64,000 bases of DNA from Cyanophora paradoxa CCMP329 (lineage: Eukaryota; Plantae; Glaucophyta), in contig QPMI01000058.1 in assembly GCA_004431415.1 (NCBI GenBank), positions 1-64,000 on the forward strand, written 5' to 3'. Below the pieces are notes generated by a model that was given only the letters and a program-made list of their open reading frames with translations, was not told where the DNA came from and did not search any database. Of this stretch, positions 23,765 to 31,826 are shown one piece after another. Position 1 is the stretch's first letter, and each line of letters begins with the position of its first letter. The translations under genes were made by a program, and so were the position numbers.

Positions 23765-26600
23765 CTAGGGCCGGCGGCGGCGGCGCGGGGAGGGCGACCG
23801 CGGGCGGCTGCGGCTGCGGCTGCGCCTCCGCTGCGGCGAGCGCGAGCGCCCGTCGTCGCCGCCGCCGCCCCTCGCGCCCCGCTCCCGATCCCGCTCCCGA
23901 TCCCGATCCCTGTCCCGCTCTCGGCTGCCCCGGCGGTCCGCGTCGGCCCGCCCGCGCCCACGGGCGTCGGCGTCCCCCGCGCCGCCCTCCCCCGCCGGTC
24001 CTCCGGCGGCCGCCCCGCGCCGGCCGCGCGGTCGGCGAGCTCCCCCTCTTCTTCCCGCTCCCGGCCCCGCTTCTCGGCCCGCGCCCTGCGCCCTCCCTCT
24101 CAGCGCGGCGCCCCGCGCGCCTCGCGGCGCCGGCTCGCGCGCATGCGCACCCGTCGCGGGGCGGCGAGGGCGGCGGCGGCTGCGGGGCCGCCGGCCGCTC
24201 GGGCTCGGCGGCGGCCTCGCGGCGGGCCTCCGCCAGGCGCGAGGCCGCCTCGAGCTCGCCCATCTTCCCCGCTATGATCTCCCGGTGGATCTGAGCCGAC
24301 GCGGTTAGGACCTGAGGCAGAGAGAGGGGGGGCGGTGCGAGGCGGGGCGGGGCGGGGCGGGGCGGGCGGGCCTGGAGCGGGGTGCGGCGGACGTTCTTGC
24401 CGCGGTACGTGGCGCGCCGCCGCTTGTAGTCGCGCGCCTCGGCGAGCTCCTCGAGCCGCGACTTGACGCGCGCCTCCTCCGCCTTCGGCATCGGCTGCAG
24501 CGCCGACTCCGCGTCCCGCTCCCGCTCCTGCCCACGGGGCGGCTCAGGCGGGGCTCAGACGCTCAGGCGACCCGAGCCCGGCTCGCCTGGCGGATGAGGT
24601 CCGATCGGAGGGATCGGATGGCGTCCGCCCGCGCCACGTCCTGGTCGTACTGGAGGGGGGAAGAAGTCGGGGGGGGGGGTACGGGGGGAGCGGGGAGGGG
24701 AGGGGGGTACGTGCCTGCAGGAGCCGCTCGTTGACGGCCCGCCGCGCCACGATCTCGTCGGCCTGGAGGAGGGGGGAGGGGGGGGGGGCAGAGACATCAG
24801 GGGGAGGGAGAAGGAGCGAGAGGGGTACGCCAAATCGGCGCACGATGGCCTGCCGCCGCCGCTGCGCCTCGCGGATCCTCCGCAGCCGCTCCTCCTGCGC
24901 TCTCTGCGGGGGACTCAGGAGAGGGGGGGGGGAAGCGGAGGGGGGTACGGCGCGCTCGCCTGCTGGGCGTCGAGCTCGGCGCGGATCCACTCGTCGAGCT
25001 CGAGGGACTCGCCCCCCGCCTCCATCCCGGGGGGTAGGGGCTCCGCCCCCGATGGGGGTACCGCAGCCGGCGGGGGCAGGGAAGGGGCGGCGGGGATGGG
25101 AACGAGTGGATGAGGCCGGGAGAAGAAGGAGGATTCCGCGTACCCCGCCGGGGCTGCCGGGGCCGGGGCCGCCGCAGCGGCTGCGGCGGCCGACGTGCGG
25201 ATGGCAGCCGCACGCTGCGAGGCGTCAGCGACGGACGAGAACCGCGGAGCTCGGATCTAATGATGATTACATAAAAACGCGCCTTCTCGACGATAGCGAG
25301 CGCCAGAAACTTCCACAGGGCCAGCACGAAGGCCCCAGTGCCTGGCGGGTGGTAAGGCGTCGAAGTCCGGGGGGGATAGATCGGAGGGGGGTACGCGGGG
25401 CGGTGAACTCGTGGAGCTCGGCGGCGACGCGGTCGGCGTGACGTCGCTCCGGGTGCTGCAGGAGGCTGCGCGGGGGCGGCTCGGAAGGAGGGGGGTACGA
25501 AAAGCAGCAGGGGGGTACGCCGCGCCTGTATACGAGGCTCACGAGCTCCATGTCGAACACGGGGACGAAGCTGCGGCGCGGGTCAGGTCGGGTTGGGGGG
25601 GGTTAAGTCCGGGGGGTACGGGGGCGTACCGATCCATGTTGGAGATGAGCCACCCGGTGACGCGGCTGCGGGAGAGCTGCTCTACGGGTAGTCGGGCGAA
25701 GGGCCGCGGCACGCGGCGTGTCCATCCCTGCACGAAGCTGCGCGGGCCTCAGGGGTTGGAGGGAGAGGGGGAGGCCAAGCGAGGCCCCGCGCGCGCGCGC
25801 CTGCGGATGTGGGGGAGGGGGGTGAGAGAGGGGTCCAGCATTCCCGCGATGCGAGCGTCCTCCTCCTCGTCCTCCTCCCCCTCCTGCACCACGGCGGGCG
25901 CCGGGCCGCCCTCCCCGCCCTGCGCCACGGCGGGTCAGGGGACGGAACCGGAGCGGCCGAAACGGGGCCCGCACGGGATCGAGCCCGTCCTCGAGGGCGG
26001 CCTCGTCCTCCGGGTCGATGGCGACCATCGCGGCGGCCGCCTCCTGCGCCACCCGCCGCAGCGTCGCCTCCTCTGCGCGCCCCGCGCTCGCCTCGCCGCG
26101 CTCTCGACTCGACGAGGGGGCGAGCGCCGCACCGATGTCGTCGCTGAGCGTCACGACGTTTGGGGCGTTCTCGTAGAAGAAGAGCGAGCTCGGCCGCACG
26201 TCCTGCGGGGCGCTCGGGGCCAGCGGAGGCGCACGGGGTCGCCACGCAACAGTAGATCCCGCACCACTTTGTCGGGGTCGATGCCCTGCCGCCGAAGCCT
26301 GCACCGGAAGACGTGCCTGTCGAGCGACCGCGGCGGCATCGTGTGGCTCGGATCCACGGGGCAGCGTACGAGGCCTGCATCTTCCCGCTGCGCGTGCGAC
26401 AGTGCTTGAGTACACGCCGCGATGAGCGCCCCCGTGGCGCTCGCCTTGGGCTGCAGCTCGTCCGGCTCAATGCCGAGGCTCTTCGCGACCCGGTGCAGGC
26501 GCTGCTCCACCTCGTGCGCCCACAACAAGAGCTCCGCCTGCGGATCGCACGCTCCCGGAGGGCCGTCCTCGCCGGGCGGCCCATCCTCGCTCGGCCACAT
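23765..26600 (-). CDS. SNRNP48: U11/U12 snRNP 48 kDa protein (minor spliceosome)
   Basis: CHHC zinc finger LVRCPVDPSHTMPPRSLDRHVFRC; conserved C-terminal motif EELAEARDYKRRRATYRGKNVRRTPLQIHREII; RD/RS-rich tail ending at a TAG at about 23765. Confidence 0.85.
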
Positions 26601-26753
26601 CGTTTACGCCGTACCCGTCGACTTTCGGCGCCAACTCAAAGTCCGCCGCAACCAGCGCTCTACCACAGCCAGGAGCGCTCAAAATCGCTTTGAGTTTAAA
26701 TCAGCATCGAACTTGGGCGTCCGCACCGCCGAAACACCGCCCAGCAACCGAAG

Positions 26754-29700
26754 ATGTTCGGCAACCCGAAGCTGAAGAAGCCGTCGTTGCATATCAGAAC
26801 GCAGGAGGATGCCAACTCTCTGCTTCAGGTGCGCGAAGCGGGCCAGGCGCCGCGCGCCGCCGACGAACATTGAGCGGGTTTGAGCATCCCGCCGCAGATA
26901 ACGACGGTCTGCACGCCCCTTTCGATGTACTGCACAAAGGACGCGCGGGCGGTAGTCGTCTACTACGACAGGTCGCCGCGCTCGGACCGCGCGTCGGCGT
27001 GCGCGGGCTGGGCTGACTTCCGACGCGGCGCGACAGGACGATGCACTCGCTCGGGAAAGACGGTTGGGGTGACAAGCCGAGCGCGGACCACGTGAGCCTG
27101 CGGGCGCTGCTGGAGGTGGCGAGCGCGTGCACGACGGCGGCGACGGGCGCGGCGGCCGAGGAGACGAAGCCTCTGGAGGCGGCCATCGTGCAGATGTGCT
27201 CGACGCTCGCTATGCCCGTCGAGAAGACGCGGAGCCGCCTGCAGAGGATAGCGAACGTCGAGTGGAACACGCACAACCGCTGGTCCCTCACCGTCAACAC
27301 GAGCGACGGTGCGCGAGCCCGCGCGCGCGCGCCTCCGCCGGCCGCTCGCGCTCCGTCCCGACGCGGGCGCAGCGCCGACGGATGCGGGATTCAAGTACGT
27401 TATGCTCATGGGCGCCGCCGAGCGCGTCTTCTCGCGCTGCTCGTCGGTCCTCGTCAACGGGTACGTGAACATTGGCCCAGCCGCTCGCGGCGCTGATTTG
27501 ATCGCGTGCGGCGGCAGGTCCATGATGCCCATGAGCATGGTCGAGAAGGTGCGAGGGCCGACGGCCCAGCCCCGCCCCAGGCGGGCGGGCGCCCCGCCGA
27601 CCGCCCCGCCCCGCCCCGCCCCCTCGCAGCGCGAATTCGAGGCCGGATTCGTCACCATGGCGACGAAGGGCCTCCGCGTCGTCGGATTCGCGGTACCCCC
27701 CTCCCACCTCGCACCGGTACCCCCCCGCCCGCCCACCGGCCGGGCGCGCAGTGCATGCGGCTCGAGGACGCGGAGCTGCCGTTCGAGCAGGGCCAGCCCT
27801 TCCACCTCGACCGCATCCCCACGGTACCCCTCCCCGCTTCTTCCCTCCCCCCGAACCGTCATCTGACGTCGTACCCCCCATCCGCAGTCTGAGCTGACGT
27901 TCTGCGGGATGGTCGGCATCGTGCAGCAGCCGCGGGCGAACGCGCGTCTCGCGCTGCAGGCCCGCCCGATCCTTCCGAGTGCCCTCTCCAAATCTTTGAA
28001 GCCTGACGCCGGCGGCAGACGCTGCGGCAGGCCGGCGTTCGCGTCATCGTGACGACGGGGCAGCACCCCCTGATCGCCGAGGCGAGCTCCGCGTACCCCC
28101 CCTCCGCTCCGCCCCCCGCGCTGATCGATCTCCCGGGGGCAGAGCCTGGCCCGGGAGATCGGGCTGCTGGGCGGGGGCGCCCCCGAGTCGGTCGCCGACG
28201 GCGTCGCCCCGGACCACGTACTACCCCCCCCCTCACTCCCCCCCCCCCGCTTAGACCGACTTCTTCGTTCGCAGCCGCAGTTCTACATGTTCCCGACGCC
28301 GCCCAACTCGGAGCACTACCGCGGGTCCCCCCAGCGCAGCGCCCAGAACGGCGCGGCGGCGGCGGCGATGGCGGCGCCGGCGTCGCCCGCGTCGCCCAAC
28401 GGGTCGGCGGTGCCGTCGCCGCTGCCGCCGCGGGCGCCGGGTACGGGCGCCGCGCTCGAGTTCGGGTCCTCCTCCTCCCCGTCCAAGGTGAAGCTATCGT
28501 CCCCCCTCCTCCCATCTCTCTCCTCTCATCCCCCTCCCTCCCTCCCTCGCGAGCAGAGCGGGGCGCTGATCGTGAGCGGCGAGGAGCTCGGCTCGCTCTC
28601 CTCGGCCGAGATGGAGAAGGCGCTTCGGAAGCCCCAGCTCATCCTCGCAATGTCCACCCCCCAGGTGCTCGAGAAGAGCTGAGCGCCGCAGCTAAGAAAG
28701 AGAGCCTAGGAAACGCCATGCTCAAGAGAGCTTTAGAAGCGCCTAAGAAACGCAAGCCCCAGCTCATCCTCGCAATGTCGACGCCCCAGGTGCCCCAAGG
28801 AGAAAGCTAACAATAAAAAGACGCTCAAGAACGCTTTAATAACGCTTTGAAATGCCTCTAGAGGTTCACGAACGTCTAAAAACGCTCAAAAAACGCTTGA
28901 AAATTCCCCGAGAGGAAGCGCCAGCTTCGCCAGCCCGCCAGCTTCGAACATCCGATCCGCCTAGACACGCCCCGCGCCGAGTCGCGCCGCCCCGAGTCGC
29001 GCCGCGCCCGCGCTGACGCCGGGCGCCCTCCCCCCTCCCTCCCCTCCACCGCCTCGCATCTAGCATCCCGCCTCGAAGAGACCACCGATCCTCCCGAAAC
29101 CGCCCCGCCACGCGCCGCGCCCGCGCTGACGCGGGGCGCCCTCCCCTCTCCCTCCCCTCCAGCACCGGCTGCAGCTGGTGGCGGCGCTGCACGGGCGCCC
29201 TTAGAACGCTTTAAACCCTTAAGAAACGCTTTAAAACGCCCCTAGAGAAACGCTTTAAAACGCCCCTAGAGTGTGCGCCCGCGCTAGCTTCTTGCATCCC
29301 GCCTCGAAGCCGCCCCGCCCCGCCCCGCCCCGCGCCTGCGCCCCGCGCTGACGCGGGGCGTCCTCCCCCCTCCCTCCCCTCCAGCACCGGCTGCAGCTGG
29401 TGGCGGCGCTGCACGGGCGGGGCGAGCGCTGCCTCGCCGTCTCCTCCGGTTCCTCCGAGGACATCCCCCGTGCGCCGGCCCGCCCCCCGTTCTAGAGGGG
29501 GGCCGCTCTAGAGGGGCGCCTAGAGGGAGACGTTAGGTTTATTCTTGAGGACATCCCCCGTGCGCCGCCCCGCGCCAAACAGAAGAGAAGGGGGGGGGGA
29601 GGGGGGGGTAGATCACTTTTATAGTCCTCGACTCGAGATGGACGCCCCGAGAGACCCGGGCGCCGCCCTTTGGCCGCCCAGAGACGCGCCGGCCGGACCT

Positions 29701-30305
29701 CAAGGACCCTCAAGAGGGATCTTGGAAGCCTTCGGATTTTAGAGGCCCGCGCCGTTGGAGCGGCCAGAGACGCGCCGGCCGACCCGTGACCGCGCGGGGG
29801 CGGCGGGCGGCAGTGCTGCTGCAGACGTGGGGCGTCGTACCCGACGGCGCCGCCTGCCCCGAGGCCCGCACCATGTCCAAGGGCGTCCTCGGTGAGCGGT
29901 ACCCCCCCTCGAGATCTAGAGCGGTACCCCTGCTTCCTCCTCTGACGGCGTACCACCCTTCTTTCGTAGCGGAGTACAGCGTGGAGGAGCTGGTGCGGGG
30001 CCTCCTCGCCGTCCGCAAGTTCCAGAGCCAGCAGGTGCGGAGGGGGGGTACGGGCTCGGCGGTGGGGGCGGGGGAAGGAGGGGGAGGGGTGAGGGTGGCG
30101 CAGCTTGATCCTTAGATGGCGGGAGTGGGCCCTAGGCGCCCCGGGGAAAATCAAGGGGGCGGTGCTGGCCGTTGCATGTATTTATGGCGCTGCGCCGGCG
30201 CCTCCCGGAGCCTTTTTTTCCCGCGCCGAATCGGTGGCTCTGAGATGGACCGGTACCCCGCAGGAGGGCAAGGAGGGCTGCTACGACGCTTGCTCCGTCA
30301 TGTAG
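26754..30305 (+). CDS. Catalytically dead, membrane-less P2C (Na/K)-type ATPase cytoplasmic loop (N and P domains) with a C-terminal CaaX motif
   Basis: Colinear with the M4-M5 loop: ITTVCTPLSMYCT (cf. [13 protein letters not shown]), EWNTHNRW (FNSTNKY), MGAAERVFSRCS (KGAPERILDRCS), GLRVVGFA, LTFCGMVGIVQQPR (DPPR), VTTGQHP (TGDHP), AVSSGSSEDIP (TGDGVNDSP). The last exon reads EGKEGCYDACSVM-stop. Confidence 0.85.
28990..29420 (+). repeat. Imperfect tandem triplication of a branch point, pyrimidine tract and 3' splice site, plus the exon start in two copies
   Basis: CCGCGCTGACGC(G/C)GGGCG..CTCCCC..CCCTCCCCTCCA occurs at about 29008, 29121 and 29343. The last two copies continue GCACCGGCTGCAGCTGGTGGCGGCGCTGCACGGGCG. 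Confidence 0.9.
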
Positions 30306-30798
30306 CGCGCTATGTATAGCTACCCCCCGCCCGCCGGCCCGGCCGGGCCCGGGGCGCCGCCCTCGCCCCCCTCCCTTCAGATTTCAGATGCCTTCAAATT
30401 CGCACAAAGTTCCTAGTCCCTCGTTCTGCTGGGACTTGCGCGTGGCGCTATAAATAGCTATGCCCCACCGAGGCTCCGAGGCTCCCTGTTAACTTGTTTC
30501 GAATTCGCGCCACCCTCCAGAGAATCAATATTCAAGTGGCCAGTGAATTCGAAGTGAAAACAATATGCAAGCTGAAGAAGAAGCTGCGCGGTCCGGATCC
30601 GGAGGCTCCACAGGCTCGCTAATCATATAAGTCGGTGGCCCGAAGCAAGACACTGCATGCGCACAGTGGTACTATAGCTATGATAACGATTTGACGTCGA
30701 CGTGGACTCAATCGCTCGAACACAAAGCCTTGAAGGGCGTAAGAAGGTCGGGGCCGTAACTTAGGAAGGGGCCACGCGGCCGCGAGTACTTGTTAAGA

Positions 30799-31826
30799 TT
30801 ACGTATACACGCATGTGTATATGAGCAAAACGCTTAAGACAGTGCAAACCCACATCGCAGCGCGAGTCAAGACGGAGAGGTCCTCGGACGTGACAGGCCT
30901 AGGTACGTATACCTGTATACGTACATGTTAGGTTGCAGTTAATATATATATTGATCCATGAGGCTGATTATGACTCGATGAGGGCTCCGCTGGCATATTG
31001 CAGGCTACTAACTAATTATAACATTCTAGATCTAGATCGCGCTGGTATACGTATCTAGATCTAGAGCGCGAGCTCGAGACTGGGGCGGGTAGACGTAATC
31101 ATGATCACCTGCTCCGGATCCATTCGTTGTTGCGATTTTAGTTCGCTCTCCTGACTTAAGCTTTCGGCCTTGCTCTCCAGGGCCTCGATCCTCCTCTCCA
31201 GGCCTTCGAGGCGCCGCCTGTACGTGGCCAACACCCTCACCTCCCGCCGAGCTCTGGCGCGCGACGTCGACGGCTCCTGCTCCAGATCTAGACGCGATGT
31301 ACATATGCATGCTCTCCCGGAGCCCGAGCCCGCCTCTGAATTCGAAGCAGCCTGCGAGAAGATTATATAAATCAGTACGGAACGAAACGAATTTGCATGC
31401 ATACGGGGATCGATTTCCATGCAGCGGCCAGATCTAGATGTAGATCGATATCTATAGCTAGATCTAGACCAACGCGTACGCGTACCGCCGCTGGACATGC
31501 CCGTTCGCCTGCGACCGCGCAACGAATCAAATTTAGACCTATAAAGAGCAGGGATTTCCCGCGGGCAGCGCCGCCGGGCGTACGCGTCCAAGTTCACCTT
31601 GATCGTGATTTCGCGAATCGATATCGATTCCGCCGCTCCGCTGCCTGACCATCATGCAGGCCGACTTGCGCACCTCCTTGACCGCCGAGTCGCCCAGCGG
31701 AAGGGAAAGTTCATGGGAGAAAGCTCGCGGCGTGGCGTGGCTAAAGATGTCACCGACAGCGCTGTGGTTGAAACTGTTCGCAGCTCGCGCTGCTCCTCGG
31801 CCGAGTGGCCGGATAGCCGCCAGCAT
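30799..31826 (-). CDS. Possible small orphan: presequence-like N-terminus, coiled coil, C-terminal hydrophobic helix
   Basis: MLAAIRPLGRGAARAANSF...; RRRLEGLERRIEALESKAESLSQESELK; putative last exon AAMWVCTVLSVLLIYTCVYT-stop. The exon linkage is not fully resolved. Confidence 0.3.

Follow-up and report, generated by a model that had tools for sequence, protein, structure and literature searches.

A transcribed gene in the glaucophyte Cyanophora paradoxa with a predicted product resembling a catalytically dead, CaaX-ended cytoplasmic loop of a P2-type ATPase

P-type ATPases rank among the best-studied membrane proteins, and their cytoplasmic headpiece is not known to function apart from the transmembrane domain. 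The archaeal "soluble P-type ATPase" MJ0968 is a soluble HAD-superfamily phosphatase that resembles P-type ATPases. CaaX-prenylated peripheral membrane proteins include those of the Ras type (CVIM, CVVM) and prelamin A (CSIM), and a CaaX box in which X is Met directs farnesyltransferase. Parts of pump headpieces also exist as isolated N or N+P constructs (PDB 1q3i and 1mo7), and the recombinant PfATP4 catalytic-domain construct is another isolated pump-domain example (PMC12152296).

One gene in the window analyzed here (the whole stretch of 64,000 nt from contig QPMI01000058.1 of C. paradoxa CCMP329) can be compared with each of these systems. Its predicted product is the M4-M5 cytoplasmic loop of a P2-type pump, that is, a P domain split by an N domain, and nothing more, and on sequence comparison the loop appears most like those of the Na,K/H,K (P2C) pumps. 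Like the P2C ATPases (Na,K- and H,K-ATPase alpha; TIGR01106), the protein is collinear over the M4-M5 loop, and it carries degraded versions of strings typical of this subfamily: ERxxxRCSS, which follows the KGAPE position, and TG(D)HPxxA. In contrast to them, it is without transmembrane helices, A domain, phosphorylated Asp, or GDGxND, it contains a low-complexity insertion of 71 aa and ends in a CaaX tail, and it is approximately half the length of a pump. The isolated-domain constructs represent the same part of the pump as a soluble polypeptide, but these were cut from active pumps in the laboratory, whereas here the predicted protein comes from a natural gene, is dead, and carries a probable lipidation signal. 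MJ0968-type HAD phosphatases are also free of transmembrane segments and have P-domain ancestry in common with this protein; unlike it, they have kept the nucleophile Asp and are active, and they have neither the large P2-type N domain nor a CaaX end. The CaaX proteins are similar in that they end in C-a-a-X with Met as X, have another Cys shortly before this box, and carry a basic patch in a different part of the chain, but their cargo is a GTPase or a lamin, whereas here it would be a pump headpiece with predicted prenylation.

The locus is a real, spliced, and transcribed gene of 16 exons, all on the + strand. RNA contigs assembled from runs X1, X3, and X4, which belong to two studies (contigs of 1720, 1730, and 1769 nt), described one spliced + strand transcript of 1.72-1.77 kb at about 26615-30459 of the window, and each contig aligned to the window in 16 blocks with 15 joints. 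The 15 joints were absent from DNA run X14. The coding sequence of 1476 nt (491 aa and a stop) opens with the ATG at 26754 and closes with the TAG at 30303-30305. It is preceded by a 5' UTR of 139 nt (26615..26753, +) and followed by a 3' UTR (30306..30459, +) that is 110-155 nt long across the contigs, which end at 30416, 30422, and 30459. Thirteen of the 15 introns were GT-AG; for the other two, which follow exons 8 and 9 (27960-28018 and 28082-28142), GC-AG was the sole possible reading within the ambiguity range of the tool. Introns 12 and 13 carry local duplications of exon ends. An earlier, sequence-only reading of this DNA had proposed an intact frame over about a dozen exons, the last of them a small exon encoding CSVM. 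The transcript, its intact frame, and its last exon were present in contigs of all three runs, though the exons number 16. The proposed chain was otherwise right, except that the RNA sets the exon 9/10 junction between ...LIAE and SLAREIGLL.

These contigs also bear on the possibility that the gene is a fragment of a longer one, seen here as an alternative isoform or through mis-assembly, and that the complete version has transmembrane exons upstream or downstream. Contigs cannot prove transcript ends, and there were 29 further joints beyond those listed, but the three independent assemblies share their starting point to within 7 nt (26615-26621), and the TAG is followed by a UTR in every contig. 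A scan for ATG and stop codons showed that the 5' UTR is free of ATG and that a TAA lies in frame at 26697-26699, inside the transcript and ahead of the start codon, and therefore there are no transmembrane exons upstream. The upstream DNA is occupied by a head-to-head neighbor on the minus strand, the first two exons of which lie at 26264..26600 (RNA contigs at 26445-26596 and 26264-26387). Exon 2 of this neighbor matched the Pfam family zf-U11-48K (38 bits, cut-off 21.1, E 1.5e-09), which identifies it as U11/U12 48K (SNRNP48)-like. The two start codons, at 26754 (+) and 26600 (-), are 154 nt apart, as the earlier reading had stated for an SNRNP48 neighbor, and the neighbor transcript ends approximately 20 nt from that of the gene on the opposite strand. 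The related claim that there was no room for missing N-terminal exons is upheld by the ATG-free 5' UTR, the in-frame TAA, and the adjoining minus-strand transcript. Stop codons thus close the frame on both sides, the 5' UTR TAA on one and the TAG at 30303 on the other, and M1-M10 and the A domain are missing. None of the exons contained a hydrophobic helix (the highest 15-residue hydropathy was 1.22) or matched the Pfam families E1-E2_ATPase and Cation_ATPase_C, and a search of all six frames of the 64-kb window for the pump signatures DKTG[TS] and GDGxND found zero occurrences. A longer form that spans the membrane is therefore considered very improbable.

Comparisons with Pfam, NCBIfam, the PDB, the Atlas, and E. 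coli MgtA were all run exon by exon. Exon 1 (26754..26828) contains the start codon and encodes a basic N-terminus, KLKKPSLHIR, which is proposed to be a remnant of the post-M4 stalk; its best alignment inside MgtA 335-375 was to MgtA 343-355 and was not significant (z 0.7). In exon 2 (26898..26971), VCTPLSMYCT is found at the expected position of the phosphorylation loop (xCxDKTGTLT). This exon was in register with MgtA LCTDKTGTLTQD in an alignment that was not significant, and within it VCTPLSMYCT was in register with MgtA LCTDKTGTLT, which puts Pro at the position of the motif I nucleophile Asp. Exon 3 (27037..27308), the first part of the nucleotide-binding (N) domain, matched Pfam PF13246 Cation_ATPase with 23.4 bits (curated cut-off 21.7) at profile positions 22-67, its Atlas feature matches led to PF13246 clusters (score 0.94), and it aligned with NCBIfam TIGR01522 at positions 351-421. 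Exon 4 (27373..27460) encodes the end of the N-domain core, where MGAAERVFSRCSS replaces KGAPERILDRCSS. Its PDB matches, 37 distinct sequences, were all Na,K- or H,K-ATPases, the best of them being the isolated N domain 1q3i (E 0.011), and it matched TIGR01106 at positions 476-498, continued the PF13246 profile at positions 74-91, and aligned with MgtA at z 4.5. The N-domain GLRVV motif is retained in exon 6 (27630..27692) and is identical to MgtA 506-510 (z 5.1, a score reached by 1 of 1000 shuffles); we take its Arg to be the nucleotide-contacting arginine. The joints of exon 5 (27518..27548, 31 nt) and exon 7 (27752..27823, which alone had no match) were taken from the RNA contigs.

Exon 8 (27888..27959) marks the re-entry into the P domain. 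Its PDB matches were to the DPPR region of the SPCA1 Ca-ATPase, and it also aligned with TIGR01522 at positions 488-509 and with MgtA (z 4.2). Exon 9 (28019..28081) has TTGQHPLIA for VTGDHPITA; its PDB matches, 36 distinct sequences, were all Na,K- or H,K-ATPases, it matched TIGR01106 at positions 581-598, and its alignment with MgtA (z 6.2) had a score reached by none of 1000 shuffles. Exon 10 (28143..28217) was in register with MgtA 578-587, which was not significant. Exon 11 (28275..28487) encodes 71 amino acids that are rich in Pro, Ala, and Ser and have no pump counterpart. It had no family match in Pfam or NCBIfam, the diagonal of the MgtA alignment jumps by about 90 residues across it, and it is probably a disordered insertion. 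The second half of the P domain, to AMSTPQ (the ARxxPxxK region), is encoded by exon 12 (28557..28664), which aligned with MgtA 589-619 (z 3.7, a score reached by 3 of 1000 shuffles) and had no usable match in the Atlas feature search. In exon 13 (29385..29469), SSGSSED is found at the expected GDGxND position, and the start of the exon was in register with MgtA 620-632, which was not significant. The joints of exon 14 (29814..29891) came from the RNA contigs, and its best unrestricted MgtA alignment, to 655-661, fell on the diagonal of exon 12. Exon 15 (29970..30034), the proposed final P-domain helix, ends where M5 would begin; its register with MgtA 674-689, just before M5, was not significant.

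Five of the exons (4, 6, 8, 9, and 12) aligned in order to MgtA 469-619, with z from 3.7 to 6.2, and four exons fell on one MgtA diagonal, a result reached by 5 of 500 shuffles in a narrow-diagonal test. This test replaced a collinear-chain statistic with an 80-residue tolerance, which was equaled by 157 of 200 shuffles and was not discriminating. The Pfam and NCBIfam scans covered 14 exons, all but the short exons 5 and 16, and 12 of these had no match; the single-exon PDB searches gave no match for exons 2, 6, 12, 14, and 15. PDB matches of exons 3 and 13 were attributable to chance only. Exons 1, 2, and 13-15 had no significant match alone, and the exact domain boundaries were placed by register and collinearity. 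The subfamily signal was mixed: exons 4 and 9 pointed to TIGR01106 and, in the PDB, to Na,K/H,K-ATPases only, exons 3 and 8 matched best with the P2A model TIGR01522, exon 8 also matched SPCA1, and all of the single-exon E-values were weak (0.01-1). The identity of the protein as a pump loop, which had been proposed from the sequence, agrees with the passage of the PF13246 cut-off by exon 3 in the Cation_ATPase profile check, with the PDB matches, and with the collinear MgtA alignment. The end points proposed at TM4 and TM5 have the expected MgtA register, but in exons 1, 2, and 13-15 this register is not statistically significant.

The substitutions that had been noted at three motifs were present in the exon alignments with PDB proteins. 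The Lys of KGAPE is Met in exon 4 (MGAAE), the Asp of DPPR is Gln in exon 8 (QQPR), and the Asp of TGD is Gln in exon 9 (TGQHP for TGDHP). The reported loss of DKTGT is in accord with the absence of DKTG from every frame of the window. For the reported change of GDGVND to SGSSED, GDGxND was likewise missing from every frame, but the register of exon 13 at this point was not significant. With the phosphorylated Asp missing, the protein can neither transport ions nor go through the E1-E2 cycle, and it cannot be classed as a pump. The loss of the KGAPE Lys, a nucleotide-pocket residue, makes ATP binding uncertain. The pocket is retained in part, with GLRVV identical to that of MgtA and with a Trp aligned to the Phe that is conserved in the PF(D/N) motif, in an alignment that was not significant. 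The layout of P and N domains that has been kept and the nucleotide-pocket residues that survive might also suit a still-active soluble HAD-type phosphatase or ATPase with a non-canonical nucleophile. However, the HAD nucleophile Asp and the acidic residues of motif IV are missing and TGD has become TGQ, and since we know of no HAD or P-type enzyme that works without the motif I Asp, an active enzyme of this kind seems highly unlikely.

The mRNA ends in ...GCYDACSVM and a stop codon, encoded on exon 16 (30264..30305; EGKEGCYDACSVM and the stop). This ending is of the CaaX type, and another Cys precedes the CaaX Cys by four residues. The joint from 30034 to 30264 was present in 3 of 3 RNA contigs, and the CSVM final exon that had been predicted is thus spliced into the mRNA. 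It is the sole CaaX-like end among the 677 stop-to-stop segments of the window. The protein may be prenylated and tethered to the membrane, and it may act, as the sequence-only reading proposed, as a nucleotide sensor, a scaffold, or a regulator of true pumps.

We consider it moderately probable that the locus as a whole is best explained as an expressed gene for a dead P2-type headpiece that is lipid-anchored and acts non-catalytically at the membrane. It would probably have originated when part of a P2C pump gene was duplicated, and the duplicate would then have lost its catalytic residues and acquired the Pro/Ala/Ser-rich insertion of 71 aa and the terminal CSVM mini-exon. CSVM would be farnesylated, and the Cys four residues upstream perhaps palmitoylated. 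The lipid would take the place at which helix M5 goes into the membrane in a pump, and the basic N-terminus KLKKPSLHIR the place at which M4 comes out of it, so that the dead headpiece would lie on the cytoplasmic face of the membrane, oriented much as in its ancestor. In this position it might act by binding an adenine nucleotide in the partly kept N-domain pocket and/or by binding partners of the true pumps. The broader idea that pump headpieces can be reused as lipid-anchored non-catalytic modules, with this farnesylated pseudo-ATPase binding adenine nucleotide or the partners of P2C pumps and so sensing the local energy state or tuning the pumps, is speculative and unlikely; if true, it would define a new class of transporter-derived pseudoenzyme. 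If the lipid-anchored headpiece is real, no transporter-derived pseudo-ATPase of its type would have preceded it, and it would offer a natural experiment on lone N and P domains (nucleotide sensing, regulator docking, or decoy). It would also represent gene birth in progress, through a partial duplication that took up a small CaaX exon. The glaucophytes, to which C. paradoxa belongs, have very little functional annotation.

Relatives of the gene were sought with exon 3 (90 aa). Among 1.84 billion representative proteins there were none at E ≤ 0.001, the query's own protein included, and of 599 pattern matches in metagenome contigs, 0 were confirmed by tblastn. The gene is an orphan so far, known from a single genome. 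Literature searches on P-type ATPases that are pseudoenzymes or lack transmembrane segments, and on prenylation in Cyanophora, returned nothing relevant, and we found no published description of a dead, CaaX-ended pump headpiece without transmembrane segments. The sequence-only reading had not recognized the protein as a described family, which is consistent with the outcome of these literature and sequence searches.

The lack of relatives in proteins and metagenome contigs would also be expected of an expressed relic, a functionless partial duplicate of a P2C gene that is transcribed by the bidirectional promoter of the SNRNP48-like neighbor and ends in a CaaX-like sequence by accident. All of the catalytic motifs are degraded, as in a relic, and the exon-end duplications in introns 12 and 13 would be signs of recent structural churn. 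Open frames are cheap at this GC content, a wrong frame of the exons having just 2 stops in 478 codons, and in such GC-rich DNA an intact frame is weak evidence. On the other hand, the divergence of the motifs implies a long time, yet GC3 is 0.94, splice sites work at 15 of 15 introns, and the frame has been kept; neutral sequence that old should have lost its periodicity, splicing, and frame. GC content at codon positions 1, 2, and 3 was 0.65, 0.51, and 0.94 in the exons and flat in the introns (0.70, 0.67, and 0.72), and a GC3 so far from the intron level near 0.70 argues for coding sequence that is maintained rather than decaying. This signal of selection, drawn solely from inside the gene (codon-position GC, splice sites, and frame), argues for a maintained gene. 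The CaaX end also has a spliced exon of its own and is unique among the open segments of the window, which does not favor an accidental ending. The relic is possible but, in our judgment, doubtful. The end of exon 12 differs from its intron copy at 3 positions, all of them third codon positions, which also speaks for a maintained coding sequence.

The exon chain of the pump-like gene (26754-30305, + strand) was rebuilt via three-frame translation and then checked against public sequencing runs; GC content across the region is 0.60-0.76 per 500 nt and short introns are abundant. Parts of the stretch were present in 16 runs from one organism, seven of which contained 0.29-0.39 of the sampled words, the share expected for exons only (1476 of 3801 nt) plus UTRs. 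Contigs from three RNA-type runs of two studies (X1, X3, and X4) and from one DNA-like run (X14) were aligned to window positions 25100-31000. Each RNA-type run contained one contig of the gene (1720, 1730, and 1769 nt), starting at 26615-26621, ending at 30416-30459, and skipping exactly 15 intervals. X14 spanned the gene with none of the 15 joints, and therefore the skipped intervals are introns in the genome that are removed in RNA. No variant was seen in the gene in these four runs. The coding sequence, spread over 16 exons, is 1476 nt long (491 codons and a TAG stop), the end of exon 9 (28081) being set by the RNA joints. The 15 joints in X1, X3, and X4 bear out the spliced transcript proposed in the sequence-only reading, as well as its small CSVM exon (42 nt, 30264-30305), which encodes the ...GCYDACSVM end and is spliced in all three RNA contigs.

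Thirteen of the 15 introns are GT-AG. The other two (27960-28018 and 28082-28142) are readable only as GC-AG within the ambiguity of the joint, a high share for one gene. The exon-intron rhythm over the first ten exons (26754-28217) is unusually regular: six measure 72-75 nt and another two 63 nt, and the lengths of the ten introns lying among them range over 57-81 nt.

The 5' UTR (139 nt) has no ATG and contains an in-frame TAA at 26697, so the protein starts at 26754. The neighboring gene on the opposite strand (-) begins at 26600, with transcript contigs that end at 26596. Its second exon gave a 38-bit match to the U11-48K CHHC zinc finger, which confirms the earlier assignment of this neighbor as SNRNP48 with 154 nt between the two ATGs. 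The pump-like and SNRNP48-like transcripts lie about 20 nt apart (26596-26621), the head-to-head promoter region between them being extremely compact. At 30691-30915, three runs have RNA contigs of about 600-730 nt that continue past a joint at 30915 and represent another expressed gene just downstream. No hydrophobic stretch was found in any exon peptide (highest 15-residue Kyte-Doolittle mean 1.22), and neither DKTG nor GDGxND, the pump signatures, occurs in any frame of the 64-kb window.

Family, PDB, and feature searches were run exon by exon, with single-exon queries. Exon 3 matched the Pfam Cation_ATPase profile (N domain) at positions 22-67 with 23.4 bits (curated cut-off 21.7), and exon 4 carried on along the profile at positions 74-91. 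P-type ATPase N-domain clusters also came top for exon 3 in a language-model feature search (score 0.94, 18 of 30 hits). All 37 distinct PDB hits of exon 4 and all 36 hits of exon 9 were Na,K- or H,K-ATPases. For exon 4 the top hit was the isolated Na,K-ATPase N domain (E 0.011), with VMLMGAAERVFSRCSSVLV aligned to LVMKGAPERILDRCSSILV, and in exon 9 RQAGVRVIVTTGQHPLIA aligned to RTAGIRVIMVTGDHPITA. Exon 8 aligned to the DPPR region of SPCA1 (QQPR vs DPPR). Among NCBIfam profiles, TIGR01106 (P2C) was matched by exons 4 and 9 and TIGR01522 (P2A) by exons 3 and 8, with collinear profile coordinates. The single-exon E-values are each weak, yet the hits are mutually consistent, in the correct order and with the correct spacing.

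Each exon was also aligned separately to a true P-type pump, E. coli MgtA (L001:12626-15322), with shuffled-exon controls. Without restriction, exons 4, 6, 8, 9, 12, and 14 fell at MgtA positions 469, 504, 533, 558, 590, and 655, keeping exon order. Four exons shared one alignment diagonal, which was reached by 5 of 500 shuffles, and exons 12 and 14 shared a second, about 90 residues off; this offset fits exon 11, a 71-aa Pro/Ala/Ser-rich stretch without a counterpart in pumps. When alignment was confined to the expected MgtA stretches, exons 4, 6, 8, 9, and 12 gave z of 3.7-6.2. Exons 1, 2, 10, 13, 14, and 15 were individually not significant, yet each was in the expected register, for example VCTPLSMYCTKD on LCTDKTGTLTQD, HRLQLVAALHGRG on HKERIVTLLKREG, and, at the last helix before M5, EYSVEELVRGLLAVRK on EKSLMVLEEGVIEGRR (none significant alone). 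The proposed start after M4 and stop before M5 therefore agree with every alignment; statistical support is confined to the central two thirds of the protein.

In the alignments the Lys of KGAPE is replaced by Met, and the Asp of DPPR and that of TGD are each replaced by Gln; the nucleophile Asp and GDGxND are missing. The loss of catalytic motifs noted previously was thus upheld, and the protein is predicted to be dead as an enzyme. The N-domain string GLRVV, whose Arg is a nucleotide-contacting residue in the pump family, is identical to that of MgtA, and the conserved Phe of the PF(D/N) motif is matched in register by a Trp in an alignment that is not significant. Since some N-domain features survive, nucleotide binding is possible but uncertain.

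Farnesyltransferase recognizes C-a-a-X ends in which X is Met, as in prelamin A (CSIM) and N-Ras (CVVM), and the CSVM end fits this rule. Four residues before the CaaX Cys there is another Cys. The window has 677 stop-to-stop segments of 60 aa or more; of these, 18 had a Cys at -4, and the CaaX pattern was found in the CSVM end only. The observation behind the sequence-only reading was confirmed and its interpretation in part: the gene, its splicing, pump ancestry, absence of transmembrane helices and catalytic residues, and CaaX-type end all stood, and a lipid anchor is inferred, as would be any role as sensor, scaffold, or regulator.

The main rival, that the gene is an expressed relic without function, is unlikely in our judgment. 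No orthologue was found: exon 3 had no hit at E ≤ 0.001, self-hit included, among 1.84 billion representative proteins, so the gene appears to be absent from those public protein sets, and no relative of exon 3 was found in metagenome contigs. Each of the 15 splice sites is functional, with the frame intact over 16 exons; an open frame alone is weak evidence, because as few as 2 stops interrupt the 478 codons of one wrong frame. GC at codon positions 1/2/3 is 0.65/0.51/0.94, while introns are flat (0.70/0.67/0.72), a three-base periodicity that sits poorly with prolonged neutral decay in view of how far even the best-conserved motifs have drifted. A 43-nt copy of the exon 12 end within intron 12 differs at three positions, all third codon positions, a small hint toward a maintained coding sequence. 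The gene combines an unusual architecture and solid transcript support with being an orphan of one genome. A literature search for natural TM-less or pseudoenzyme P-type ATPases found nothing; the nearest item, as far as the available part of that source goes, was the PfATP4 catalytic domain made as a laboratory construct (PMC12152296).

The two long introns, 12 (28665-29384) and 13 (29470-29813), carry duplicates of the exon borders that flank them, including splice sites: the final 39 nt of exon 12 with the donor (28751-28793, 93% identical), the acceptor of intron 12 with the opening 35 nt of exon 13 (29120-29197, 97%), a weaker third copy of the latter border (29007-29084), and the exon 13 end plus donor (29547-29576). 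The RNA joints fall at the first donor and at the last acceptor. This looks like local tandem duplication making decoy splice sites or longer introns. Intron 12 also contains AT-richer short repeats, AACGCTTTAAAA / AAGAAACGC, amid GC-rich DNA (28811-28906 and 29216-29263). One RNA run had a low-depth 257-nt contig at 28715-28971, so part of intron 12 is retained or is transcribed elsewhere in the genome. In intron 5, a C-rich simple repeat, (CCCCG)n (27590-27625), had an X14 depth of 291 in its bin and dozens of loose ends; given the many foreign X14 DNA contigs on it, this repeat is dispersed through the genome. Across the 64-kb window there are 37 copies of GTACCCCC on the + strand and 27 of its reverse complement GGGGGTAC. 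The motif is often exactly at intron donors (GTACCCCCC; for example 27693, 27824, and 28218), and may represent an extended consensus for donors or a repeat carried by introns in this genome.
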